The notes beneath the pieces are model-generated. The model made no database searches and was not told the DNA's origin. It saw only the letters and a program-made list of their open reading frames with translations. The translations under genes and the position numbers were made by a program. Shown piece after piece: positions 12,389 through 36,800 of a stretch of 64,000 nt of DNA. Location of the stretch: the NCBI GenBank assembly GCA_002269645.1, contig NIVC01001733.1, positions 124,001 through 188,000 on the forward strand, written 5' to 3'. Numbering within the stretch: position 1 is the stretch's first letter; every line of letters starts with the position of its first letter. The DNA comes from Macrostomum lignano (lineage: Eukaryota).

Positions 12389-15300
12389 ATGCACGCCTGT
12401 CTGGCTGCAGTGATCGCAATTGCATTGCTTGGATTTCAAGTTGAAGCTGCAGAAAAAGACAGCAGCAAGACTGTCGATGCCAACGCCCTGGAGCAGTACG
12501 GTCCGGCTGTAGACGCGATTGCAAACGCAATCAGCAACTCAGACAAGAAGACCAAGGACTTGCTGGATGATCTCACGCAATCAACTGACGGTCAAGCCAC
12601 TCCACTCATCACCAGGGAAATTCTAAAGAACATGCTGAAAGAGCGCTCGGCAAAGACGCAGAAAGCAGGCACGAGATCCATCAGTCTGCAGGCCGACAAG
12701 GGCTTCAACGGATTCTCCAACTATCAGCCTTCGAATTGGGTGATGACGGAGACTGTAGGCGAGCCTGAAAAAATGAAGGAAGAGCCAGAAGATAAGATGC
12801 CCGTCTATGTCTATCCAATGGGGGTTGGTCCGGTGTTGATGAATGGGTGCACAGGTGCATCATATCCCAAGACTAGCAAGTGCTACTCCAGCAAGGTGCT
12901 TGGCAAGGGCAATACAATCTGCATGAACCTCCTGGACGCTGCCGCGTACATCGGCGTCGGCTTCGACGGACGAGGATTCTACAAGATCGAGAGCCGCAAA
13001 GCCAGTCTGGTGCAGCGCTACTGCTCCAGCATGGCCACCTTCCTGGACAAGGACGTGCCCGACACGATGAACGTGTTTGGCATCTTCGAGACCACAGCTG
13101 AGACCAAGTCGTTCCGGTCTGCGGACGAGTACATGAGCTACATCAGGGACAAAGCCGGTCTGTCAGAGCAGCGAAATTTGTTCTTAAGCGAGTCTCACCA
13201 GCACAGCTCTTCTCGCAAGGCGGGGCGGGACAGCTCTGGCAGCTCGTCATCAACCACTAGCAGTCAATCAGCCTAAAAAAATTCACAGTATTCCCAGGCT
13301 GCAAGAAAACAAGGTTCTACTGACGATTTCTTTGCCATCATGTATGTGAGTGTAATCATGTACAAAATTTCACTGGATGATGTGAAGCCCAATGACATCA
13401 ACTTTGCTGCGCTCAGAGACTACATGAGTCTTCCAGAGTCCTACTTTTCAGTGGGCGCTGCCAGCAAATTTCAAGACTTTCTGCTACGCTGGGGCACGCA
13501 TTTTATCCGGTCTGGAAAGTTCGGCGGTCAGCTAAAAATCACAATGAGAGCAAAGACAAACAAGTTTGCGTCGTCGGAAGAGTTTGCCAGTCTGGCTGAG
13601 ACCGAGTTCCAGTCAATGTTTTCATCGCTGCAGTCAAAAAATTCTCAGAAAACCACTCGGACGGGCTTTTTCGGTCTTGGACCCAAGAAAACGACTACAA
13701 CAAAATCGAGCAGTGAAAGGTCGGAGAGCCAGTACAGGAGCACAAGAAATGAACGTAATCAAGAGTCCCACAGTTCTAGCGGGTCCGAGTTTACCCAGAC
13801 CACCGTCGAGGCTCAGGGAGGAACTCCGGAGATCGCAGAAGCTCTCGTTGACTTTTACACTCCGGCATTCAAGCAGCTGTACCACAGGTGGATCGCCTCC
13901 ATCAATGACTATGTGAAGCCGTTCGAGTTCAAGCTGAAGCCCATCGATCAGCTGTTCGACATGAACATGGACGACCTGTTTCCGGCTGGAAACCGCGACT
14001 TTGGCTGTATTGGAAGTGCGGGAAGCAAAGTGAATATTTTGACGGAGCCCAAAACTCGTCGTCGCTACTACCTCGATGAGGAGACTTACTTTGCTAACAA
14101 TCAGACAAAAACTAAATTGGTTAAAATCTACTGCAAATACAAGAACCAACAAGACTTTAAGAACGCTCTAAAGAGACGAAGACTCTCACTGGAGAAGGCC
14201 GTAGCTGCGTACATGACGGAAGGTCCCTTCCCAACCTCCTCACACGAGTTGAAAGCAGGGCAACCCGGTTGTGAGAGCTCTACACTGGCCAAGATCGACG
14301 TGTTTAACTCAAATAACAACACACTGACGTTTCTGCAGCTCAAGAAGTCCCCGTTTTTAATCTCATTTGATCTGCCCCAGGATATTCCGAACTTGTTGAA
14401 ATCGCAAGCCAAGTATGTGATGACGTATCTAAAAGACAGGTGGTTTGCGACCGAGCCAGGGCACCATCATGCACACCTGTACGAAGGCTGTCAGCTGGAA
14501 GGCTTCAAGCCAGCTGAGACTAAAATCTGTATCTATGAGGAGGAGACAGGCTTCTTCCATATCGATCCGCTGGACTTTATTGCATCAAAGCGACGCAACC
14601 CAAACCTTCCAGACTGGATAGAGGGTACCACGGTTGCTAGGGCTTCTCGGATAGAAGGGCAAAAAGGCACAGACTCGACTGATGCGGCGTCAATTCCGTG
14701 CAACGTTCGATGGTTGAACTCTCACAGACTGGACCCTGATAGGGAAGAAAACTGCCTTTACTTTACGGCTGCGACTGCTGGAGACATCTTTGTTATATTC
14801 GCGTCCATACCAAGAGACCACACAACATGGTACTACCTGCAGATCAATATGGATGGAGTGACATTCTACAAAGCAATGAAACCGCAGAAGAGAGACTATC
14901 AGAAGGGAATGGGGACACTTGGAGACAAGAACCTGTACCAGTCCTACTTCTTGTGTGTGAATCAGGCCAATGGATCAGTTCTAATGCAGTTCGGTAAGGC
15001 GGGCTCGAACAGCGAGATCGGCACTGTCTACTCTGGGTACAAGTTCCGACCGGACAGCCAGTACAGCCGCCTGTCTTTCTACACGTTCGGAGCGGGCTCG
15101 AAGTCTGTGACATTCACCTCACCAAGGATATGCCGCAGGTGGAGTGTTTGAACAATAACTACAAGCTGGTTGATGGTCACTGCATCCTGGATTGTCACAA
15201 AGAGTGCATCGACTGCAATCTAGCAAAAGATGACACGAGCTGCTTCCAGTGTCGCAATGTGCGCGTTGAATTGTGGAATTCTATTGGGGGCAGGAGAGTC

Positions 15301-17094
15301 AGGACAGTGCAGTGCTTGCCAGAGTGTCCAGTTGGCTACCAACTGAGTGACAGCAAGGAAAATCTGTGCGTGCCCTGCCAACCAGGTACTTTCAAGAACA
15401 CAACGGGAAATCATAACTGCTTGCCATGCGCTCCTGGAAGTTTTTCTGCATCACAAGCGACTGTGAGTTGCATGCTCTGCAGTCCAGGAAATTTTGCTTC
15501 CAAGCCAGGATCGGTACAGTGCCAGCAGTGCCATGTTGGAACAGCGAGCAGGTTTAACGGATCTGCTTCGTGCGGGGCCTGCAGTGCCGGCTTGTTCGCA
15601 GCTCAGCGAGGTCAAACGGAGTGCACTCCCTGTCCAGTGGGACAGTTCAATAAAGCAGAGAGACAGACGCAGTGCCAGTTGTGCTCTGCGGGGTTCTTCG
15701 CCGACAAGCCAGGTCAGAAATCCTGCACTGCTTGCCCTGCTGGAACGTCGAGTGCTGAGGTCTCAGTGAGCTGCGCCAACAACTGCAAGAGGGGCGAGTT
15801 CAGTCCAGTCGAGGGCATCCCTTGCGCCAAGTGCCCTGCAGGCTCGTTCAGTCCCAGTGCGGGATCGGTAAATTGCACTTCGTGTGCCAAAGGCAGCTAT
15901 TCCAGTCGTTCTGGGTCAGCGTCTTGCACCCCGTGCCCTGCTGGAAGCTTTGCTGACCTAATATCCTCAACAAACTGCAGCCAGTGCCCTGCAGGCTCGT
16001 TCAGTCCCAGCCCGGGATCGGCAAATTGCATTTTTTGTGCCAAAGGCAGCTATTCCAGTCGAGTCGGATCAGCTTCTTGCACCCCGTGTCCCCGGGATTC
16101 TACCAGCCACAGGCAAACCAGACGCACTGTAAGAGCTCCAAGCCAGGGTGGTACGTCGATACGGAAGGCCGTTCGGAGCAGAGAATGTGTCCGCTGGGGA
16201 AGTATTCCGGTCTTGCTGCATCGGAATGCACCGTTTGTCCTTCTGGGACCTTTGCTGACCAAATGGGCTCAACAAACTGCAGCCAGTGCCCTGCTGGAAG
16301 CTGGAGTAAAGCAGGCTCCGCACCTTGCCAGCTTTGCGAAGCAGGCTCATTCTCAGTTGGAAACGCTGCCAGCTGCTCTCTGTGCCCAGCAGGCACTTTC
16401 TCTGGCAGCTCAGGCAGCGGTGAGTGCTCCAAATGTCCCGCTGGCACCTACGTTAGCGAATCCGGTGCCAAAGGATGCCACAATTGTGATTTGAACTTCG
16501 CTCTGAAACGCCGCATTGGAATGGCGCATTGTGACCTGTGCCCCGACTCTGGGTCTACCTTTGGCACCGATAAATGTTACCGTAAGTAAACTGGAGCTGT
16601 ATATAGCTAAAAGCTAGTGTTTACTGCTTTTACTAAAGTACAGTTTGACCCATACGAATACTCATACTAACATGCTTTCAGGCAAGATACGTATGAAATG
16701 CAATCCGAGCTTTGACGAGTGTGAGAAAACTATCGATAACGATGTGAACACATACGGAGTAACAATTCACATACTCCACGCACCGGCTGGCACTCAAGAG
16801 TACCGCAGTCACTGGCAGTACACACTCGACCAAGTGGCGAATAAAGTAAAAGGCTTCATCGTCTGGCCCAGAAAATATTACGATGTTTCGTCTTCCAGAA
16901 ATCTGCAAATCACTCTATATGATTCCTATAAACAAGAGCTTACTCGATGTTACATCCACACAGATTTTGTGCATCCGTACTCAATGCACGAGTGCGCTGC
17001 TTCGAATGTGAAATATATGAAGATCAACCATAGTTATGACGAAAGGGACAGAAGAGAAGTCAGCTTAGCTGAATTTGCACTGTATGCTGGGTAG
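12389..17094 (+). pseudogene. Secreted MACPF-domain protein with furin-like and GCC2/GCC3-type Cys repeats and C-terminal lectin/F5-8C-like domain (~1535 codons); disrupted in this sequence
   Basis: Signal peptide MHACLAAVIAIALLGFQVEA. MACPF signature WGTHFIRSGKFGG at 13490-13528. ORFs 12374 and 13340 share a frame separated only by TAA 13274-13276. Frameshifts near 15107-15112 and in the CCCC run at 16090-16093. One 100-bp GT-AG intron 16582-16681 with TACTAAC branch point and matching phase 1. AATAAA at 17108-17113. Pseudogene versus sequencing error is unresolved. Confidence 0.85.
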
Positions 17095-17671
17095 TTTGGC
17101 GTACTGAAATAAACAATGGTAATTATCATGTACGCTCGCATTGACGACAACTTGATGATTTCAAAGCGGATTTTATTCAGCAAAATATAACAAACACATG
17201 GCCACGGGATAACATTCAGAAAGCATACCTTATTCCTTTGTCATATTTTCATTAACGATTAATATTTTCATGCACGGAGCAGCCCCGAGTGCGCAGGGTC
17301 CAGCTGCCGCTTCACGTCTCGGCGATATACAGGGCGTTCTCGACCACCGAGAGACTTTCTTGTGAGTCCGCGGCTCAGCTGCTTTCTCACTCCTCTCTCA
17401 TTCTATCATCTCTCTCTTACTACTCTCACCTCTGTCTCGCTTTTCACACTTTCTCGCTCCCCTCTCTCCTCCCCTTTCTCTCTCACTCCTCTCTCACTCC
17501 TCTATAGCTCCTTTTTCATTCTTCGCTTAATCAATTTATGGGTAATGCTTATATGTATTTTGTTTAGGGTGTCTCGCAAAAGAAAGTTTCGGTGTGAGGG
17601 GCTACTGAGCTTAGGTCGAGTAGTGAGCGGTTTTCCCCTCCTCCTTGCCGTCTCTTGATTGTGGGGTTGTA

Positions 17672-23829: not shown

Positions 23830-25859
23830 AGCATTGAAATTTCAGTAATTCTCTCTAAGAGTCATTATAGCACTACAGCATTATAGCGATTCCCTGCCAG
23901 CCTCGACATCGTAGGGATTCCCAAATGAATCTCTTAACTTCGACATGTAGCTTATTTTATTTTTTACATTACGCTTTTTTTATCAGTGATCCCTCCCCTG
24001 AGGAGGCATCAAATAATGTAATAAAAAGTTTTCAATAAACTTCATGTAGCTTCTGACTTTAGCCTTGAAATCTCATTTATACCCCCGTGAGCCTTGACAT
24101 TTCAGCTATTCCCCCCCGTAAGCCTTGACATGTCAGCGATGGCCCCCATATACCTTGAAATCTAAAAAATCCCCTGTTATTCTGTTAACCTTGAAACCCG
24201 ATAAAATCTAACCCTCAACCCACACCTGACCTAAACCTAACTTTAACCCAACCTAAAGCCTTGAAATCTCAGCAATTCTTCTCCCCTAAGCCTTGACATT
24301 TTAGTGATTCCTTCTTTAAGAATCACAGCACTATAACAATTTCCACCCAGCTTTGACATCGTAGCAATTCCCAAATGAATCTTTTAACTTCGACATGACT
24401 TTTATTTTATATATACATAGTGCTACTTTTATTTTTTACATGACTCTTCTTCTATCAGCGCCCCCCCCCGTGGCGAGCCAACAAAGAATGCAATAAAAAA
24501 ATTGAGTAAAGTACATGAACTTTGAAGTAGCTTCTGACTTTTGCTTTGACATCTCAGAACCCCCCCCCCCTGTAATCTCAGTTATTCTCTGAGAGCCTTT
24601 ACGTCTAAGTTTTTCTCCCTAGCACAGCATTATAGCTGCATTAAATTTTTACATGACACCCTTCATGTCCGACATGACGCTTCTTTTATTGTACCATCGT
24701 ACCATTGTACCATCTTTTATTGTCCAGCTACATGTATCCTTGAAATCTTAAAAAATCTCCTGTCAAACCTTGTAAGCCTTGACATGTCAGTAATTCCCCC
24801 CATAAGGTGTAACATATCAACTTCCCCCCTTGACATCTCAGCAATGCCCCCGATAAGCCTTGGAAATCTAAAAATATCTGTCAACCTTCTAACCCTAACC
24901 CTAGCCTACCCTAACCCTAACCCTAACCCTAACCCTAACCTAACCCTAAAGCATTGAAATTTCAGTAATTCTCTCTAAGAGTCATTATAGCACTACAGCA
25001 TTGTAGCGATTCCCTGCCAGCCTCGACATCGTAGGGATTCCCAAATGAATCTCTTAACTTCGACATGTAGCTTATTTTATTTTTTACATTACGCTTTTTT
25101 TATCAGCGATCCCTCCCCTGAGGAGGCATCAAATAATGTAATAAAAAGTTTTCAATAAACTTCATGTAGCTTCTGACTTTAGCCTTGAAATCTCATTTAT
25201 ACCCCCGTGAGCCTTGACATCTCAGCTATTCCCCCCGTAAGCCTTGACATGTCAGCGATGGCCCCCATATACCTTGAAATCTAAAAAATCCCCTGTTATT
25301 CTGTTAACCTTGAAACCCGATAAAATCTAACCCTCAACCCACACCTGACCTAAACCTAACTTTAACCCAACCTAAAGCCTTGAAATCTCAGCAATTCTTC
25401 TCCCCTAAGCCTTGACATTTTAGTGATTCCTTCTTTAAGAATCACAGCACTATAACAATTTCCACCCAGCTTTGACATTGTAGCAATTCCCAAATGAATC
25501 TTTTAACTTCGACATGACTTTTATTTTATGTATACATAGTGCTACTTTTATTTTTTACATGACTCTTCTTCTATCAGCCCCCCCCCGTGGCGAGCCAACA
25601 AAGAATGCAATAAAAAAATTGAGTAAAGTACATGAACTTTGAAGTAGCTTCTGACTTTTGCTTTGACATCTCAGAACCCCCCCCCCCCCCTGTAATCTCA
25701 GTTATTCTCTGAGAGCCTTTACGTCTAAGTTTTTCTCCCTAGCACAGCATTATAGCTGCATTAAATTTTTACATGACACCCTTCATGTCTGACATGACGC
25801 TTCTTTTATTCTACCATGATGCTTCTTAATATTTTAAATGACACTTTCATTACTTTTTA

Positions 25860-28255
25860 AATGAGGCTTCTATGATTTTTTCATGACGCTTCTATGATTG
25901 TTTACATGACGCTTATATGATTGTTTACATGACGCTTCTATGATTTTTTACATGACGCTTCTATGATTGTTTACATGACGCTTCTACAATTTTTTACATG
26001 GCGCTTCTATGATTGTTTACATGACGCTTCTATGATTTTTTACATGGCGCTTCTATGATTGTTTACATGACGCTTCTACAATTTTTTACATGGCGCTTCT
26101 ATGATTGTTTACATGACGCTTCTATGATTGTTTACATGACGCTTCTATGATTTTTACATGACGCTTCTATGATATTTTAAATGATGCTTCTATGATTGTT
26201 TACATGATGCTTCTATGATTGTTTACATGACGCTTCTATGATTTTTTACATGACGCTTCTCTGGTTTTTTACATGACGCTTCTATGATTTTTTACATGGC
26301 GCTTCTATGATTGTTTACATGACGCTTCTACAATTTTTTACATGGCGCTTCTATGATTGTTTACATGACGCTTCTACAATTTTTTACATGGCGCTTCTAT
26401 GATTGTTTACATGACGCTTCTACAATTTTTTACATGGCGCTTCTATGATTGTTTACATGACGCTTCTATGATTGTTTACATGACGCTTCTATGATTGTTT
26501 ACATGACGCTTCTATGATTTTTTACATGACGCTTCTATGATTTTTTACATGACGCTTCTACAATTTTTTACATGGCGCTTCTATGATTGTTTACATGACG
26601 CTTCTATGATTTTTTACATGGCGCTTCTATGATTGTTTACATGACGCTTCTACAATTTTTTACATGGCGCTTCTATGATTGTTTACATGACGCTTATATG
26701 ATTGTTTACATGACGCTTCTATGATTTTTTACATGACGCTTCTATGATTGTTTACATGACGCTTCTACAATTTTTTACATGGCGCTTCTATGATTGTTTA
26801 CATGACGCTTCTATGATTTTTTACATGGCGCTTCTATGATTGTTTACATGACGCTTCTACAATTTTTTACATGGCGCTTCTATGATTGTTTACATGACGC
26901 TTCTATGATTGTTTACATGACGCTTCTATGATTTTTACATGACGCTTCTATGATATTTTAAATGATGCTTCTATGATTGTTTACATGATGCTTCTATGAT
27001 TGTTTACATGACGCTTCTATGATTTTTTACATGACGCTTCTCTGGTTTTTTACATGACGCTTCTACAATTTTTTACATGGCGCTTCTATGATTGTTTACA
27101 TGACGCTTCTACAATTTTTTACATGGCGCTTCTATGATTGTTTACATGACGCTTCTACAATTTTTTACATGGCGCTTCTATGATTGTTTACATGACGCTT
27201 CTACAATTTTTTACATGGCGCTTCTATGATTGTTTACATGACGCTTCTATGATTGTTTACATGACGCTTCTATGATTGTTTACATGACGCTTCTATGATT
27301 TTTTACATGACGCTTCTATGATTTTTTACATGACGCTTCTACAATTTTTTACATGGCGCTTCTATGATTGTTTACATGACGCTTCTATGATTTTTTACAT
27401 GGCGCTTCTATGATTGTTTACATGACGCTTCTACAATTTTTTACATGGCGCTTCTATGATTGTTTACATGACGCTTCTATGATTGTTTACATGACGCTTC
27501 TATGATTTTTACATGACGCTTCTATGATATTTTAAATGATGCTTCTATGATTGTTTACATGATGCTTCTATGATTGTTTACATGACGCTTCTATGATTTT
27601 TTACATGACGCTTCTCTGGTTTTTTACATGACGCTTCTACAATTTTTTACATGGCGCTTCTATGATTGTTTACATGACGCTTCTACAATTTTTTACATGG
27701 CGCTTCTATGATTGTTTACATGACGCTTCTACAATTTTTTACATGGCGCTTCTATGATTGTTTACATGACGCTTCTACAATTTTTTACATGGCGCTTCTA
27801 TGATTGTTTACATGACGCTTCTATGATTGTTTACATGACGCTTCTATGATTGTTTACATGACGCTTCTATGATTTTTTACATGACGCTTCTATGATTTTT
27901 TACATGACGCTTCTACAATTTTTTACATGGCGCTTCTATGATTGTTTACATGACGCTTCTACAATTTTTTACATGGCGCTTCTATGATTGTTTACATGAC
28001 GCTTCTATGATTGTTTACATGACGCTTCTATGATTGTTTACATGACGCTTCTATGATTTTTTACATGACGCTTCTATGATTTTTTACATGACGCTTCTAT
28101 GATTTTTTACATGACGCTTCTATGATTGTTTACATGACGCTTCTATGATTGTTTTCATGACGCTTCTATGATTGTTTACATGACGCTTTTATGATTTTTT
28201 AAATAACGCTTCTATGATTTTTAAATGACGCTTCAATGATTTTTACATGACGCTT
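25860..28255 (+). repeat. 23-bp satellite (CATGACGCTTCTATGATTGTTTA), ~100 units with higher-order structure
   Basis: Variant run GATATTTTAAATGATGCTT...CTCTGGTTTTTT recurs near 26170, 26950 and 27525. Confidence 0.95.
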
Positions 28256-30964
28256 CTTTTTAAAAAGTCTTAGTTTTCCTGACGTTGAAAAGCTTTAATT
28301 AAAAAAATTATACTCTATGAAAATTCGAACCAATTCGAACCAAACTGCATTTAGCAGTTCAGTTTGTACACCTCTAGGCTAGCTCTCATCATTTTGATAA
28401 CATCAAATTTTGCACTTATATAATTCAACACTTTAAAATCCAAGCATAGAGTAAATCACACGAAGCAGTTATGACATAATCAGTTTCTCAGTTAGTCAGT
28501 ATCAGTTAACAATATGGTTACGCAATTTAAATCAAGTCTGGTGCTACGCTTCCACACTGCATTTTCAATTCAAGTCAGAGTTACAATTCAGTTATGATGC
28601 AATCTATTTCAGAATCAGAATTCAACCAGTCAGTTTTTTCTCTAGCATTCTTACAATGCATTTCAAGTCGAAAAGTTTGCTTGACCTTTGCAAAAAAAGC
28701 ATGTTTTTCGAATATTTAATGCCTTTAGCATCGAGCAATTTCTTAGCCACGATGCATGTACAGTCACGGGAAAATTTCTGATCGAACAGTGCAAGTTCGA
28801 ACAAAATCGGTCCAGCCATTTTTTCTCTAATCAATCACATAGATAGATAGATAGACACAGACAGACTTGGAAAGTATATTGTATATTGGAAAATGGAAAT
28901 TGCTTAGATGACCTCTATGTTTTGTTAAAAGATGGAAAAGCAAACAGTGCATTATAAAGTATGTTTTGGAAAAAAGTGTGAGATTTATTTTTTTTATGAG
29001 TTAGCTTTAACAGATTAACACTTATTAACAATTATCAGTTAATTTTCAATTAACTTTATTGAAATTAGGAGTTAATAAGTTAAGATTTTTTGTTTTAATG
29101 CTAATGCTTTTGCTATTAATGGAAGTTAAAATTTTCATTAATGGTGCCTAACACTGCTTATGGCTAGGGCCTAAGTATGAGCATGTCTAGGCCTATTCTT
29201 AGGGCCTATCAATAAAATAAAAATCAATCAAAATAAAATAAATATTTATAAACTTAGGCCTAGTATTAACTTTAGTTTTTAATGCTTTATCAAAGGCCTA
29301 ATTATAAAAAAAATATAATCAAACAAAATATTTATTTTAAGCATTTTGGTTTAACTTGACCTTTGACCATTTTAAACAGTTTGTTTGTAAAATATAATTT
29401 ACTAATATAGGGCCTAATACAATATATAGTAATCAATTATGTAATTAGGATTGGCTTATAATTTTTTGAAGATAAATCTAGACTTAGTTCAAATGCTAAT
29501 AGTATACAAGTTTTAAATTAGGCCTGCTATATATTATAAAAACAAATGAAAATAAGGCAATCTTTTAGTTTGTTTAATAATATTGTTTTTGAATTTAAAT
29601 TAATATTATAATATAGTGCCTTGTAAAAATGTTTTGCCAAAAAGGATAAAAACAGTATTAGAAAATGATTTAGTATATAGGATTAATTAGGCCCTTAGCC
29701 AAGAATAAAAAGCTAAGTGGGCTATTTATATTTTTTATTAGATTTCTACCCTAAGATTTTACCCATAGATATACCTTATACAAAACATTTAAAGCTATTG
29801 TCTATATTGTCCATGGCCAAAAATCTAGTTTAAAAAGCTAAACATATTTTATTAATAATGTTTCTCATCTCTTTTGGTCATAGACATCAGTTTCTAATGT
29901 GGCATTAATGGAAAATTAGATAATAGAATATCCTTAATACATGTTTTACATTATTAGAGGGCCTAGTCAAGTTGAATATCATTATTAAGAATAGGTCTAA
30001 GTTTTTTAATTATATAATCTCTAGGGACCCTAGTTGAATAATATAAAACCAATGAGGCTTAAGAGTCTTTATAGCCAAGTAAGTAGTCATTAATAGTAAA
30101 GTTTTTAGCCATTGTTCTTTGGCTTTTGGATGTATATCTTTTTGTTTTTCTTTTTTTATCCAAGAAATACTCTAATAAAAGTAGCAAAACTCATAAAAAA
30201 CATGTTTATATGAGATAGCATAAAATCCTATTAGAATGCATTTGAAAAACTGATAGATATGCAAATTATAGAAATATGAAAACAAAATAAAAAGGAAGTA
30301 AAAATGCCAAAGATAAAACAAAAGCTTTTTAACTATATTATTTTACTTTTTAAATTCTTTTATCTAGTAACACTTGCTAAAATTTATTTTATATAATAGG
30401 GATATAATGCTACATTTTTATAATTTCCAAACATCTAGAGTATTCTATCATGATTGATAGTCATATTATATTATTATAATAGAGATAAAAGTAAAAAAAT
30501 TAAATCTGCTTATATATTGATTTTTGATTAACTGTGAAATAGTTGGTTTAGAGCTGTTAATTTAGAACCAAATAGTATCCAAAAGCTACAAAGAATGAAC
30601 ATAATGAGGCATGCACTTAAGCAAATCACCTTTCTATTATTTAGGATATGGAGCCTAACAGTTACATGGAAAGCTAATATAAGTTGGCTTATAATAAACA
30701 ATGATCAATAAGCACCCTTTAATGAAATTAACTTCTATAGCTAAGAACTAAAGTTTATGTATCTTGTCTCTATCATAAATTTGATATTCTCTATCATAAA
30801 ATTTAAAGCATAAAAGAATTTGAACTGCTTTGATCACTGTCAAAGCAAAATTATTATCAAAATACCTTTTTGTAAAGCTGGGGTATTTTCTTAAGACAAT
30901 TATTTATTTTCCCAATGAGCCATATAGAATAGGGCAAAGTGGCTTCTTATTGTATCAATTTATT

Positions 30965-31599: not shown

Positions 31600-34500
31600 A
31601 TGAGCGCTGAACTCCCCGCCGCCATTGACGTGACGGCCTGGCGCGGCGCCCGGGTGCTGTTCTACCACGAGCCCCTGGCCGCCTACCTGCCCGGCCAGCT
31701 GGTGGCCTTCACGCCCGGCAACCAGCGAGCCGTTGTTGAAGTCGAAGAGCGCCTGGCCAGCAGCCTCGGCCTGGTGGTCACCGACTATCGCTCGGTGAAG
31801 CTCAAGCTGAAGAGTCCCAGCTTGGCCGCTGGCGACGCCGGTTCCGGCCTCTCCAGCCGGCAGTTCCGCGTCCCCATCGAGGAGGTCGTGAGCGACGCCG
31901 CGCCGCAGCTCAGCCAGCTGGTCGAGGGCCAACTCGCCTGCGCCCAGCTGCCGCAGGACCAGCTGGCCGACGGTGTGTACCGCCCAGTCACCGTTGACGG
32001 CCTGTCCGCGGCCGCCCAGCCCGCTGTGACCGTGCGGCTGAGCTCCGGCCAGCTGGCGTCGGTGCACCGCTCCCAGCTCCGGCTGCTGCGCCCGCCCTGG
32101 CAGGACGAGCTGGACGCCGCTGCCGCCGCTGCTGCTGAAGTCGCCGCTGCCGCTCCTGCCGCCGCGACCACCGAGTCGACTGCCACCACAGCGTCCGCCT
32201 CTGACACCGTTGACGATTTGTCCTCGCCGCCGCCGGGACTGGAAGATGAAGATGAGTCTGGTGAGTCTGCTACTGAAATTCTTTCGGCCGTAATCTTTCT
32301 CTTATAGCTCTTCCACCTGCAGCTTCCGCTCTCCCATCTGCAGCTTCCACTCTCTCATCTGCAGCTTCCGCTCTCCCATCTGCAGCTTCCGCTCTCTCAT
32401 CTGCAGCTTCCACTCTCTCAGCTGCAGCTTCCACTCTCTCAGCTGCAGCTTCCACTCTCTCAGCTGTAGCTTCCACTCTCTCATCTGCAGCTTCCGCTCT
32501 CTCATCTGCAGCTTCCGCTCTCTCATCTGCAGCTTCCACTCTCTCATCTGCAGCTTCCACTCAATCATCTGCACCTTCGGATCCCCCTCTCTGCTACTTC
32601 TTAAACCAATCGAAACAATTCCGACAAAGTCACGAGAGCGGTGCTGCAGTCACTTTCATCCTCACTATAACAGGCTGCCTCATCGTCTCTGACAAAGACT
32701 TGTTTTCGAGATGCAGCCCTGCCGGGCACTGGGCTTGCAGTCAGTCAGAGCGGTGTCGGTTTACACATTGCTGGCCTGCGAATCTGCCAATTTGGCTGCG
32801 ACAATTATCGATATTTGCTCCACAGATGAGCCCTGCTTCTCTTTACAGTCTCTTTTATCTTCTTTCGGAGCAATAGCAGCAATTTTCAATCGCTGGCTTT
32901 TGGAGGGGGGGGGAAATCTGTTGCAGCTGGGGCCGCTTCTTTGAGCCGCCGGGATTTCTGCTGCCGGATTCCATTCTGCTTCTTTTCATGAATTGGGCGA
33001 AATCAGCCGAAAATTGCCCCAGTGTGTCTCAGCCAGGCCCTGCGCTGGCATTTGAGCACAGTGGGGGTTCCCCCGCCTTTTCCCTGTCCCACTAGTTTTG
33101 CTGCGATGCTCGCTCAGGTTCAGCTTCGCTCAGGGCGTGCAGTTGACAGTCGGTGGGAAGATGGACGTGATTCCACTGGTTGCTTAAGCGGGCGGAAATG
33201 ACTGCCTAGTTTGAGCAGGACTCAGGCCTTTCTTTCATATTCTTCACCTGCTTGGGAGTAGCGGGAGGGTAATTAAATTAATAGACAAGCTGCTGAGCTC
33301 CAGGCCTGTTGCCTATAAATAGAAATTCGGGATAAACAACCAGACTTTCGGTGCTAAGTGTCCGGTGATTCATTTCTGAAGAATTGCTTTGGTGTGCTGA
33401 ATCAGTATTCACAGATCAGGACTTTCTAGGTGGGTTTGGATTTACTATCAGTAGCCTAATGGCTTTCGGGATCAGTAGCCTAATGGCTTTCGGGATAAGT
33501 AGCCTAATGTGATTTGGAATTAGCAGCCTAATGGGATTTGGGATCAGTAGCCTAATGTGATTTGGAATCAGTAGCCTGATGGGATTTGGGATCAGTAGCC
33601 TGATGGCATTTGGGATCAGTAGCCTGATGGCACTTGGGATCAGTAGCCTGGTGGGATTTGGGATCAGTAGCCTGATGGGATTTGGAATCAGTAGCCTGAT
33701 GGGATTTGGAATCAGTAGCCTGATGGGATTTGGGATCAGTAGCCTGATGGGATTTGGGATCAGTAGCCTGATGGCACTTGGGATCAGTAGCCTGATGGGA
33801 TTTGGGATCAGTAGCCTGATGGCACTTGGGATCAGTAGCCTGATGGGATTTGGGATCAGTAGCCTGATGGGATTTGAAATCAGTAGCCTGATGGGATTTG
33901 GGATCAGTAGCCTGATGGGATTTGGGATCAGTAGCCTGGTGGGATTTGGGATCAGTAGCCTGATGGGATTTGGAATCAGTAGCCTGATGGGATTTGGAAT
34001 CAGTAGCCTGATGGGATTTGGGATCAGTAGCCTGATGGGATTTGGGATCAGTAGCCTGATGGCACTTGGGATCAGTAGCCTGATGGGATTTGGATCAGTA
34101 GCCTGATGGCATTGGATCAGTAGCCTGATGGGATTTGGGATCAGTAGCCTGATGGGATTTGAAATCAGTAGCCTGATGGGATTTGGGATCAGTAGCCTGA
34201 TGGGATTTGGGATCAGTAGCCTGATGGCATTTGGGATCAGTAGCCTGATGGCACTTGGATCAGTAGCCTGATGGGATTTGGGATCAGTAGCCTGATGGGA
34301 TTTGGGATCAGTAGCCTGATGGGATTTGGGATCAGTAGCCTAATGTGATTTGGAATCAGTAGCTTAATAAGATTCAGAATTAGTAGCCTAATGGGATTTG
34401 GAATCAGTAGCCTAATGGGATTTGGAATCAGTAGCCTAATGGGATTTGGGATCAGTAGCTTAATAAGATTCAGAATTAGTAGCCTAATGGGATTTGGAAT

Positions 34501-36769
34501 CAGTAGCCTAATGGGATTTGGGATCAGTAGCTTAATAAGATTCAGAATTAGTAGCCTAATGGGATTTGGAATCAGTAGCCTAATGGGATTTGGAATCAGT
34601 AGCCTAATGGGATTTGGGATCAGTAGCCTAATGGGATTTGGGATCAGTAGCCTAATGGGATTTGGGATCAGTAGCTTAATAAGATTCAGAATTAGTAGCC
34701 TAATGGGATTTGGAATCAGTAGCCTAATGGGATTTGGAATCAGTAGCCTAATGGGATTTGGGATCAGTAGCCTAATGGGATTTGGGATCAGTAGCCTAAT
34801 GGGATGTGGGATCAGTAGCCTAATGGGATTTGGGATCCGTAATCCCAAATGGGATTTGTGATCAGTAGCCTAATGAGATTAGGGATCAGAAGCCTAATGG
34901 GATTGGCTTTTTCAAAGTCCTTGAGGGGAAGAAAATCCATATCTAAGCAATATTATTTAATTTGCGCCACCCGCCCGCAGACTGCGACCCGCAGCTGGCC
35001 TCAGGCCGGTTCAGCAAAGGCGACGTCGTCCGGACTCCGGGCGGGGTGAAGAAGAAATTCAACGGCAAGCAGTGGCGCCGGCTGTGCAGCGCCGACGGCT
35101 GCTCAAAGGAGAGCCAGCGAAGGGGCTTCTGTTCCAGGCATCTCAGCCAGAAGGGCAAGGCGTCCAAGTGAGTGCGGCCGGGGACCGGGGATGACAATCA
35201 CTCTGGGAAGAAAATCCCAATTTTATTGGGCTCCTGATCCCAAATTCCATGAGGCTACTAATCCCAATCCCATTAGGCTACTGATACCAAATCTCATTAA
35301 GCTACTGATCCCAAATGCCGTCAGGCTACTGATCCCAAATCCCATTAGGCTACTGATCCCAAATCACACTAGGCTAGTGATCCCAAATGCCATCAGGCTA
35401 CTGATCCCAAATCTCATTAGGCTACTGATCCCAAATGCCATCAGGCTACTGATCCCAAATCCCATTAGGCTACTGATCCCCAATCCTATTAGGCTACTGA
35501 TCCCAAATCCCATTAGGCTACTGATCCCAAATCCCATCAGGCTACTGATCCCAAATCCCATTAGGCTACTGATCCCAAATCACATTAGGCTACTGATCCC
35601 AAATCCCGATCCCTACCGCAGCGGAGCCCTTCTTGGCTTTTGCAGCGCTACCTAAGCTGGATTTTTAGCAAACCTGTATAAAATTTTCCAGATACCAGCG
35701 CCCTCTGGAGCCCTGGGCGCCTGGCGTGCCTCCTGCTGCCACTGTGCCAGCCGCACCGGTTGCACCTCCACCCTTTATTGCTACCGGCTACTCCACTTTT
35801 GCTCCAGCCTCCGTTGTTACACCGTTGTCTTCTGCTTTTAGTCTGCAACTGCATCACCAGCAGCAGCAGCCGCATCCGTCCTGCACCAGCTTGCTGCCCA
35901 TTCTGGAGTCTGAGCTCAAGCGCGATCCCAGCCAATCGGTGCTTCATCATGACCAGCTGCCAGCCGTAGCCACCGCCGGCGCACTTGATGGACAGGCAGC
36001 TCGGCCAGCGGCTGCCAGCGAGTCGGACACCGCGGCTAAGGCTGCCCCGCCAACTGTTGGCTCTGCTACTATGGAAGATGAAGACGACGTGTTCCAGCTG
36101 CCGGAGAGGCCGCAGCGAGATGCTCCTCAGGCGGACAAGTCCCAGCAGCAGCAGCAACCGGAGCACATTCGCCGCCCCATGAACGCCTTCATCCTGTTCA
36201 GCAAGCGGAATCGAGCTCGCGTCCAGGAGGAGAATCCCGGCCTGGACAACCGCGCCGTCAGCAAGATCCTCGGCGAGTTGTGGTACAACCTGTCCAAGGC
36301 GGACAGGGAGCAGTACAACAGCCTGGCCAGCCAGGTCAAGTCCGAGCACTTCCGCCAGAATCCCAACTTCCGCTGGTCGTCCGCTAAGGAGCGCCGACGG
36401 TCCGACTCAGCCTCCGCCGCTGTCGCTCAGCCGCTTCATCATCAGATCGGCGGCGCTGCAGGCAGCAACGGCAGCGACAGCAACCTCCGTCTGCTGGCGG
36501 ACGCCGCGGTGGCTCATCAGGCCGCTCAGGCGTCGCCGGGGTTGCCGCCGACTTTGCAGCGACAGCAGCAACAGCTGCCGCCGCGTCCGCCTCCGCTGCA
36601 GCCGACTATGTCGAAGTTTCGTCGACTATCGGAGCATCTGCAGCAGCAACATCAGCAGCAAGGATTTCAGCGCTACTCAACAAGCAGCAGCGGAGGCGCA
36701 GTTCTGGTTCCAACCACTGTGCAGCCCAGCCTGCTCAGCATCAGCGACCAGCACAGCCAGCACCAGAGT

Positions 36770-36800
<31 letters not shown>

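Follow-up and report, generated by a model that had tools for sequence, protein, structure and literature searches.

A gene on the forward strand of the Macrostomum lignano contig NIVC01001733.1, at positions 12389-17094 of the 64,000-nt stretch analysed here (contig positions 124,001 to 188,000, assembly GCA_002269645.1; hereafter the window), is most likely a young pseudogene that arose when one subgenome copy of a genuine gene was disabled, as judged by comparison with its syntenic copies. The intact gene would encode a large secreted protein with a MACPF domain, and its relatives form, by sequence comparison, an uncharacterised eumetazoan MACPF subfamily with a conserved core and lineage-variable C-terminal recognition modules. 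For the explanation as a whole (a disabled syntenic copy of a secreted MACPF gene, the family around it and the mechanism proposed below), the probability was put at about 0.65.

As read from the sequence, the locus is a single gene of two exons, placed where the original prediction had placed it, and both its ATG at 12389 and its TAG at 17092-17094 were confirmed (Table 1). The open frame from the ATG is broken by a TAA at 13274-13276 and then continues in the same frame to about 15108, with two further frame changes, one near 15108 and one at 16093/16094. Exon 1 ends at 16581 with a GTAAGT 5' splice site and coding restarts at 16682; within the intron (16582-16681) TACTAAC is the branch site and TTTCAG the acceptor.

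The nearest protein matches, in keeping with an origin in a flatworm, are two M. lignano hypothetical proteins, Mlig021963g3 (P0001, PAA48284.1, 1221 aa, 97% identity) and Mlig027274g1 (P0011, PAA54631.1, 1538 aa), which fall in the same 90% cluster. Their loci, L001 and L003 respectively, are both syntenic with the window (L001: flanks 99% and gene 96-98.5% identical; L003: gene 95.3% and flanks 88-96% identical). The contigs of these two other copies are NIVC01004190.1 and NIVC01002877.1. M. lignano is a neopolyploid with about 85% of its genome in three paralogous copies and about 1.1% single-nucleotide polymorphism divergence in coding sequence (PMC10733133), and the window, L001 and L003 fit this three-copy picture. 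L003 without its single intron is an uninterrupted open reading frame (ORF) of 1544 codons (1544 aa), and it served as the intact reference in the three-way DNA alignment of window, L001 and L003 by which the lesions were defined.

Each of the three lesions that had been repaired in the original prediction is a real difference from L003 in this alignment. The change from TCA to TAA sits in a cluster of four substitutions, and the TAA recurs in identical context in L001, where the two frameshifts are absent, so that L003 is intact, L001 has the nonsense codon and the window has the nonsense codon plus two frameshifts. The annotated start of P0001 is the first Met past the TAA position. The 10-nt deletion removes SLMD, which is conserved in all flatworm paralogues. 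The residues lost through the 18-nt in-frame deletion, which the window shares with L001, are part of a conserved strand, KIC..G...TY.E, and are present in L003, in the paralogues P0002-P0004 and in amphioxus and cnidarian homologues. One nonsense codon and two frameshifts relative to L003, with intron and synteny kept, is what is expected of a non-processed pseudogene. The original prediction had treated the window copy as a gene once repaired; with the lesions real against an intact homeolog this reading gives way to a pseudogene as the most likely one, and the repaired protein is in effect the annotated hypothetical protein Mlig027274g1.

Two simpler accounts of the lesions were rejected. 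The window and L001 are not one locus with sequencing errors, being separated by 73 substitutions, one 126-nt indel and one 6.35-kb insertion. A tiny intron around the TAA (e.g., 13263-13298) was also discarded: the codons after the stop align to paralogue coding sequence, and L003 has TCA there.

Table 1. Features of the gene and its surroundings in the window (positions count from the first letter of the window).
Feature	Position	Strand	Basis or remark
Start codon ATG and signal-peptide-like N-terminus (MHACLAAVIAIALLGFQVEA, then AEK)	12389..12448	+	hydrophobicity; cleavage site placed by eye
N-terminal extension with conserved Cys motif YPMGVGPVLMNGC...C...C (from 12812)	12449..12946	+	motif invariant in flatworm, amphioxus and cnidarian homologues
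MACPF domain, YIGVGFDG to the helix-turn-helix past the fourth core strand	12947..13912	+	Pfam, profile, AF2/Foldseek
TMH1	~13115-13327	+	within MACPF domain
TMH2	~13556-13798	+	within MACPF domain
MACPF signature WGTHFIRSGKFGG	13490-13528	+	exact match; invariant across the family, including the GG pair
Post-MACPF linker, ~250 aa, mixed helix/strand, no family assignment	13913..14680	+	conserved across phyla; pLDDT mostly 65-88
Conserved beta-sandwich module (IPCNVRWLNSHRLDP...FYTFGAGSKSV)	14693..15108	+	all-beta in AF2 model, pLDDT 70-85
Furin-like / growth-factor-receptor-like knot, ECL...C..DCH.EC..C...C..C...C..ECP	15112..15366	+	cysteines invariant in family alignment
Cys-rich stalk, 17-aa CxxC..G.F units (Ephrin_rec_like / TNFR-like)	15367..16581	+	Pfam, repeat count
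Sole intron, 100 nt, phase 1, GTAAGT...TACTAAC...TTTCAG	16582..16681	+	read from sequence; kept in L001 and L003
C-terminal 136-aa beta-sandwich, predicted F-type-lectin / F5/8-C-like fold	16684..17091	+	AF2 pLDDT 62, pTM 0.62
Stop codon TAG	17092-17094	+	AATAAA at 17108-17113, 14 nt later
Lesion 1: in-frame TAA inside TMH1	13274..13276	+	TCA (Ser) in L003; TAA also in L001
Lesion 2: 10-nt deletion (GTCGCTGATG), frameshift	after 15108 (15108..15109)	+	window copy only
Lesion 3: 1-nt deletion in G-run (CCCCGGG vs CCCCGGGG), frameshift within CPRGFY	16093..16094	+	window copy only
18-nt in-frame deletion, loses WSIILT	14532..14533	+	common to window and L001
Minisatellite arrays (including those listed)	25792-28257, 33447-34904, 37845-39249, 43836-46456, 48668-51571, 53604-54907

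Three further observations concern the copies. About 6.35 kb at 5877-12228 of the window has no counterpart in L001 or L003 and ends about 160 nt upstream of the ATG; a search of this insertion for long terminal repeats, terminal inverted repeats and long ORFs found nothing convincing. By its position the insertion may cut the gene off from its promoter. A 126-nt Gly/Ala-rich TMH1 segment (GFNLGAIGGIVGGAIGAIAGGPAGAALGAALGGAVGG) occurs in L001 (about 9748-9890) and in P0003 and P0004, and in shorter form in amphioxus; it is absent from the window (site 13213-13228) and from the intact L003, so that among the three copies only L001 has it. The TAA and the 18-nt deletion group the window with L001, whereas this segment does not; the conflict suggests that the subgenome copies have recombined or undergone gene conversion. 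The annotation of P0011 skips 18 coding nt (WSIILT) as an 'intron' with CT..AC ends (about 12140-12160 of L003). Probably a transcript of a copy without these nucleotides was mapped onto L003, and in that case there would be transcription from a copy of the window/L001 type.

That the encoded protein is a large secreted multidomain MACPF protein, as first proposed, is supported, its MACPF identity by Pfam, by the MACPF signature and by the predicted fold. Pfam MACPF (PF01823) matched the repaired window protein at E=1.9e-15 (58 bits, against a cut-off of 21.5 bits), and the paralogues scored 47-76 bits. The MACPF signature is defined as Y/W-G-T/S-H-F/Y-X6-G-G. A family profile compared with the Protein Data Bank (PDB) matched GNIP1Aa, C9, C8alpha, C6 and perforin. 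The core was modelled with AlphaFold2 (AF2) from the intact 95%-identical homeolog and a 16-sequence alignment (mean pLDDT 62); in this model the MACPF domain has its four long strands, and two long inserts of low confidence occupy the positions of TMH1 and TMH2; the N-terminal extension is likewise modelled with low confidence. Foldseek comparison of this model with PDB gave GNIP1Aa, perforin, Plu-MACPF, Mpf2Ba1, MPEG1, C9, TgPLP1 and C6 (probability 1.0, E 1e-12 to 1e-8), and astrotactin-2 was also among the matches. Structure prediction had been named in the original prediction as a check on the MACPF assignment, and the fold was found in it with Foldseek probability 1.0. Strongly hydrophobic 19-residue windows occur in the repaired protein at residues 1-4 only, and the hydrophobicity scan of that protein found no transmembrane (TM)-like segment beyond the N-terminal signal-like stretch, which agrees with the earlier statement that there is no TM anchor.

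The domain order first described was essentially right, with some adjustment of its parts. The region after the MACPF domain is unassigned, as had been noted (no Pfam match at E<=10 and no PDB sequence match), and measures about 250 aa instead of about 300. It is followed by a module of about 150 aa with the family pattern PCNVKW.N.HR.DP...C.HFTAAS.GDIFVVF..IP.D..TWYYLQIS. This all-beta module is, going by the model, the likeliest source of the weaker Foldseek matches of the core to concanavalin-like sandwiches (PilC, neurexin LNS and PRY-SPRY, E ~2-6e-4; aligned ranges not shown). Its former description as beta-rich holds in the AF2 model, while the label Methyltransf_FA-like has sub-threshold backing and in homologues only: Methyltransf_FA (PF12248) reached 14.5 and 16.2 bits in the Nematostella and Owenia modules against a cut-off of 24.2 bits (E 0.009 and 0.03, nearly the whole profile spanned), and the window module gave no match. 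Furin-like and GF_recep_IV matches were likewise sub-threshold and seen in the Nematostella homologue only. The stalk matched Pfam Ephrin_rec_like (PF07699) in 11 stretches of the repaired window protein (E=6e-49, 164 bits, cut-off 23.1 bits), with TNFR-like Pfam families overlapping on the same cysteine repeats; like the MACPF match, this one lies far beyond what chance would give. Between 15112 and 16581, the furin-like knot included, there are 23 CxxC motifs, of which 16 of the 22 spacings are exactly 17 aa; the repeat of about 17 aa is thereby borne out, and the earlier figure of about 24 units becomes 23.

These data also bear on the idea that the gene is one of the MPEG1/perforin-2 orthologues of M. 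lignano, in which a survey counts 13 MPEG1 genes (PMC10781884). MPEG1 structures are indeed among the Foldseek matches. However, the protein has no TM segment or cytosolic tail, no MPEG1 chain appeared at E<=1 in the PDB sequence and profile searches (GNIP1Aa, C9, C8 and C6 rank instead), and the region after the MACPF domain has a conserved architecture of its own, not reported for MPEG1, with no Pfam domain in the linker. The assignment is highly improbable and was rejected.

For the C-terminal tip, the last exon was translated exactly as it stands in the window (136 aa) and modelled with a nine-sequence alignment. Foldseek placed the lectin domain of lectinolysin and a fucose-binding module of S. 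pneumoniae at the top (E ~1e-3, probability 1.0, TM ~0.5), followed by a Bacteroides F5/8-C domain and CBM32 modules, which agrees with the description of the tip in the original prediction as patterned like F5/8-C or F-type lectins. In hhalign, comparison of the tip with the true F5/8-C and F-type lectin domains of the family gave E=3.6e-4 and a probability of 37%, with the expected strands aligned. No Pfam match to F5/8 type C (PF00754 / PF22633) was obtained for the window tip at E<=10; the paralogue P0002 gave sub-threshold F5_F8_type_C matches (E=0.044 and 0.06), and a P0002-type fragment, P0177, bears the UniRef name 'F5/8 type C domain-containing'. In amphioxus P0006 a canonical or near-canonical F-type lectin motif stands at the C-terminal position equivalent to the window tip. 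The tip is thus modelled as a beta-sandwich that probably derives from an F-type lectin.

The first 911 residues of the repaired protein were used as the query for the family. Identity to this query was 61% and 53% in flatworm paralogues, 33-36% over 88-94% of its length in amphioxus proteins and 30-32% in coral and Nematostella proteins; a core profile search added Owenia and more coral members. HMMER was run exhaustively over 1.84 billion cluster representatives with an 829-position profile: 928 matched at E<=0.001 and 125 reached E<=1e-30, and some 30 of these extend over all 829 positions. The ten best were looked up and all are 'uncharacterized' or 'hypothetical', from Branchiostoma (many paralogues), Lingula and Nematostella. 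The conserved core comprises about 850 aa (N-terminal Cys motif, MACPF domain, linker of about 250 aa, beta module of about 150 aa and furin-like knot) and has more than 100 invariant columns in the alignment. Members are found in M. lignano (Mlig027274g1, Mlig021963g3 and Mlig017717g9, PAA75732.1), Owenia fusiformis (an unnamed product), Branchiostoma (LOC144874877, LOC144869188, LOC109462237 and others), Lingula (LOC106160199), Nematostella (LOC5500372 and LOC5522337) and Oculina (ACROYT_G043917), with 30-97% identity in the shared core.

Many of these proteins also have Ephrin_rec_like repeats and a C-terminal F5/8-C or F-type lectin domain. The C-terminal modules are Ephrin_rec_like repeats and a lectin-like tip in flatworms, with a kringle in one paralogue; Ephrin_rec_like repeats with SRCR, or EGF, CUB and F-type lectin, in amphioxus; and F5/8-C with or without EGF and fn2 in cnidarians, one coral protein having a D8C-like region. 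The family is strongly expanded in amphioxus, with at least nine diverged paralogue clusters. Swapped C-terminal modules together with such an expansion are typical of invertebrate immune-recognition gene families. The combination of domains that the original prediction did not recognise is therefore real and without described function, but it is not peculiar to the worm, since amphioxus, Lingula, Owenia, Nematostella and corals have it too. The original prediction had named an architecture already common and characterised as grounds against it; other animals do share the architecture, but no published study of this MACPF family was found in the literature. Beside these database records, the Logan contig SRR30276812 (L004, 4934 nt) holds the coding sequence of the paralogue P0003 as an ORF of 1523 codons without interruption. 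It has an Illumina adapter remnant at its start and neither a poly-A tail nor a spliced leader at its ends; this contig may be a transcript joining MACPF domain, stalk and tip.

Several observations, on the DNA and on the protein, pull against the explanation given above. By parsimony on the three sequences, the synonymous and nonsynonymous changes number 12/14 on the window branch, 17/27 on the L001 branch and 71/73 on the L003 branch plus stem. The window and L001 branches together have 29 synonymous changes out of 70, an excess over the expected proportion of 0.27 (kappa ~3.2, p=0.006), and the branches bearing the TAA do not differ significantly from the intact branch (P-value = 0.31, Fisher test). 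Such an excess is unlike a long-dead pseudogene and could mean that the lesions are recent, that gene conversion spread the TAA or that the copies still have some function. The 1-nt deletion in the G-run could be a sequencing error. On the protein side, both AF2 models, of core and tip, are of only moderate confidence (pLDDT ~62), and the alignment behind the tip model held true F5/8-C and F-type lectin sequences, which possibly biased the fold. The flatworm TMH1 and TMH2 regions are unusually long, polar and Ser/Thr-rich, with large indels between near-identical copies, and the window and L003 lack the Gly/Ala-rich hydrophobic segment of L001, P0003, P0004 and amphioxus; for these reasons membrane insertion is not assured. 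F-type lectins have a fucose-binding motif, HX24RXDX4(R/K), and a cation-binding motif, h2DGx (PMC5712786). The window tip lacks the canonical fucose motif, having only H-x33-R-x3-D-x4-R, and has TIDND in place of the calcium-binding h2DGx. The fucose motif is absent from P0002 and P0003 as well. The h2DGx motif is present in P0002 (AVDGS) and in amphioxus P0006 (AVDGN), the latter with a near-canonical fucose motif, H-x26-RVD-x4-R (matched with H.{22,28}, not the strict HX24). With both canonical motifs missing from the window tip, the earlier term 'glycan-targeted' is not supported.

The substitution pattern, on the window branch (12/14) as on the two TAA-bearing branches taken together, is also what would be expected if the window copy worked, its frameshifts being assembly errors in a three-copy genome and its TAA being read through or an artefact. 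The position of the 1-nt lesion in a homopolymer suits such an account, and published M. lignano assemblies have been called error-prone at paralogous copies (PMC10733133). The TAA and the 18-nt deletion, however, are not random assembly errors, because both are seen in two separate contigs, between which 73 further sites differ, and the 10-nt deletion is not typical of base-calling error. We know of no mechanism for TAA read-through in M. lignano. Furthermore, an exact look-up in public assemblies found no recorded gene product matching the 603-aa ORF of the window, and the L001 protein had to be annotated from after the TAA. A functioning window copy is thus improbable, and for the pseudogene we conclude from the aligned copies that it would have been inactivated not long ago, or else that conversion carried the TAA from copy to copy.

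For the intact protein, a route of action can be proposed by analogy. The protein would be secreted, and a target surface would be bound by one of two recognition modules, the lectin-like tip at the C-terminus or the conserved beta-sandwich. Monomers would then oligomerise and, as happens in perforin, C9 and MPEG1, TMH1 and TMH2 would unfurl to form a beta-barrel pore. Target binding would raise local concentration and activity, by analogy with the F-type lectin domain of lectinolysin (PMC5712786). The beta-sandwich is the better candidate for a membrane-proximal binder because it follows the MACPF domain and linker, at the position of the C2 domain in perforin. From the dimensions of TNFR-type cysteine-rich domains, about 21 seventeen-residue units would make a stalk of roughly 20 nm (an estimate); because the stalk would be that long, the tip is more likely a tether or capture arm than a membrane anchor. 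Pore formation is inferred for the intact protein from the MACPF proteins to which it is compared, and a role in prey capture, defence or immunity would be hypothetical.

The family may instead be non-lytic, like the MACPF proteins of the astrotactin, BRINP and Torso-like kind, its members being secreted matrix, adhesion or signalling proteins whose MACPF fold serves as a scaffold while stalk and tip do the extracellular binding. The long, polar, low-complexity TMH regions with their indels would be expected of such proteins, as would a long rigid stalk that puts the tip far from the MACPF domain; matrix and adhesion proteins typically carry EGF, fn2, kringle, CUB and SRCR modules, astrotactin-2 was matched by the core model, and conserved perforin-like proteins with non-pore mechanisms have been reviewed (PMC5483515). 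However, the MACPF signature with its GG pair is exactly conserved across phyla, the TMH regions of cnidarian members are of ordinary length, proteins that do form pores (GNIP1Aa, perforin, Mpf2Ba1, MPEG1 and C9) lead the structural matches, and immune recognition is an equally good fit for the amphioxus expansion and for tips of the SRCR, F-type lectin and CUB kind. A non-lytic family is a serious rival, if the less likely reading.

A wider reading of the pore-forming account is offered tentatively, and we would not call it likely. The family could be ancient eumetazoan 'pattern-recognition perforins', in which a killing core of MACPF domain, linker and beta-sandwich is combined with swappable arms on a rigid Cys stalk. 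The arms (F-type lectin, discoidin, SRCR, CUB, kringle) could have been exchanged lineage by lineage, and the proteins could form a secreted innate-immune or prey-lysis class parallel to complement, perforin and MPEG1 that was lost in vertebrates, insects and nematodes. Such a loss, if true, would explain why the family has been neglected.

If intact members form pores, animals would have, besides C6-C9, perforin and MPEG1, a fourth MACPF effector lineage of broad conservation, and its swappable recognition modules would bear on the means by which pore-forming immunity found its targets when there were as yet no antibodies and no complement. Direct testing is possible, as M. lignano is tractable by transgenesis and RNA interference and the family is also carried by Nematostella and amphioxus. 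Having probably no function, the window copy is in itself of limited importance; as a locus it is a clean case of early gene decay after whole-genome duplication, with one copy intact, one with nonsense only and one with nonsense and frameshifts.

The rest of the window contains three other ORFs with domain matches on the forward strand. The 623-aa ORF at 35726-37597, in a stretch of 64% GC, has an HMG box (Pfam E=1.5e-19) and probably represents another gene. An ORF at 31600-32307 matched DUF4819 (E=6e-12), and one at 61228-62163 matched the ALK/LTK glycine-rich domain (E=5e-8); the last overlaps simple repeats and may be spurious. More than 20 minisatellite arrays with units of 19-33 nt and up to 131 copies each are present, and they are the probable cause of the extreme GC and AT skews on the downstream side of the gene and of several spurious long ORFs. 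Scans of the window for tRNAs and Rfam families were empty.

Compared with described systems, the nearest relatives of the window protein are the uncharacterised animal proteins that share its core; the window copy is broken, and the C-terminal modules of the relatives differ from its own (SRCR, CUB, EGF, fn2, kringle and D8C-like). Perforin-1, C6-C9 and MPEG1 have the same MACPF fold and signature and bind their target through an ancillary domain, a beta-sandwich or another fold, that follows the MACPF domain. The window protein is far longer than these and differs in its unique conserved linker and beta-sandwich and in its Cys-repeat stalk; Pfam and hydrophobicity found none of their C2, TSP/LDLa or P2/TM modules in it, and with no Pfam match to C2 or EGF it does not have the MACPF-EGF-C2 architecture of perforin-1. 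The stalk has its counterpart in the Chlamydomonas mastigoneme protein Mst1 (PDB 8tx1), the sole solved structure with a long run of the same 17-aa CxxC repeats (phmmer E=2.5e-29 to the P0002 stalk). Mst1 is a structural hair protein without a MACPF domain, and the likeness is confined to the stalk.

Pore-formers coupled to lectins are already known. Perivitellin-2 (PV2) of the snail Pomacea resembles the window protein as an animal MACPF protein coupled to a carbohydrate-binding targeting module (PMC7082926); it is a two-chain complex of tachylectin and MACPF chains, whereas the modules of the window protein lie in a single polypeptide and its lectin fold is another one. Lectinolysin, a cholesterol-dependent cytolysin (CDC) of Streptococcus mitis, shares with the window protein the fusion of a MACPF/CDC pore-former to an F-type lectin fold, and its glycan binding enhances pore formation (PMC5712786). 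It differs in being a bacterial CDC with the lectin domain N-terminal beside the toxin body, without a stalk, and with the canonical fucose triad that the window tip lacks.

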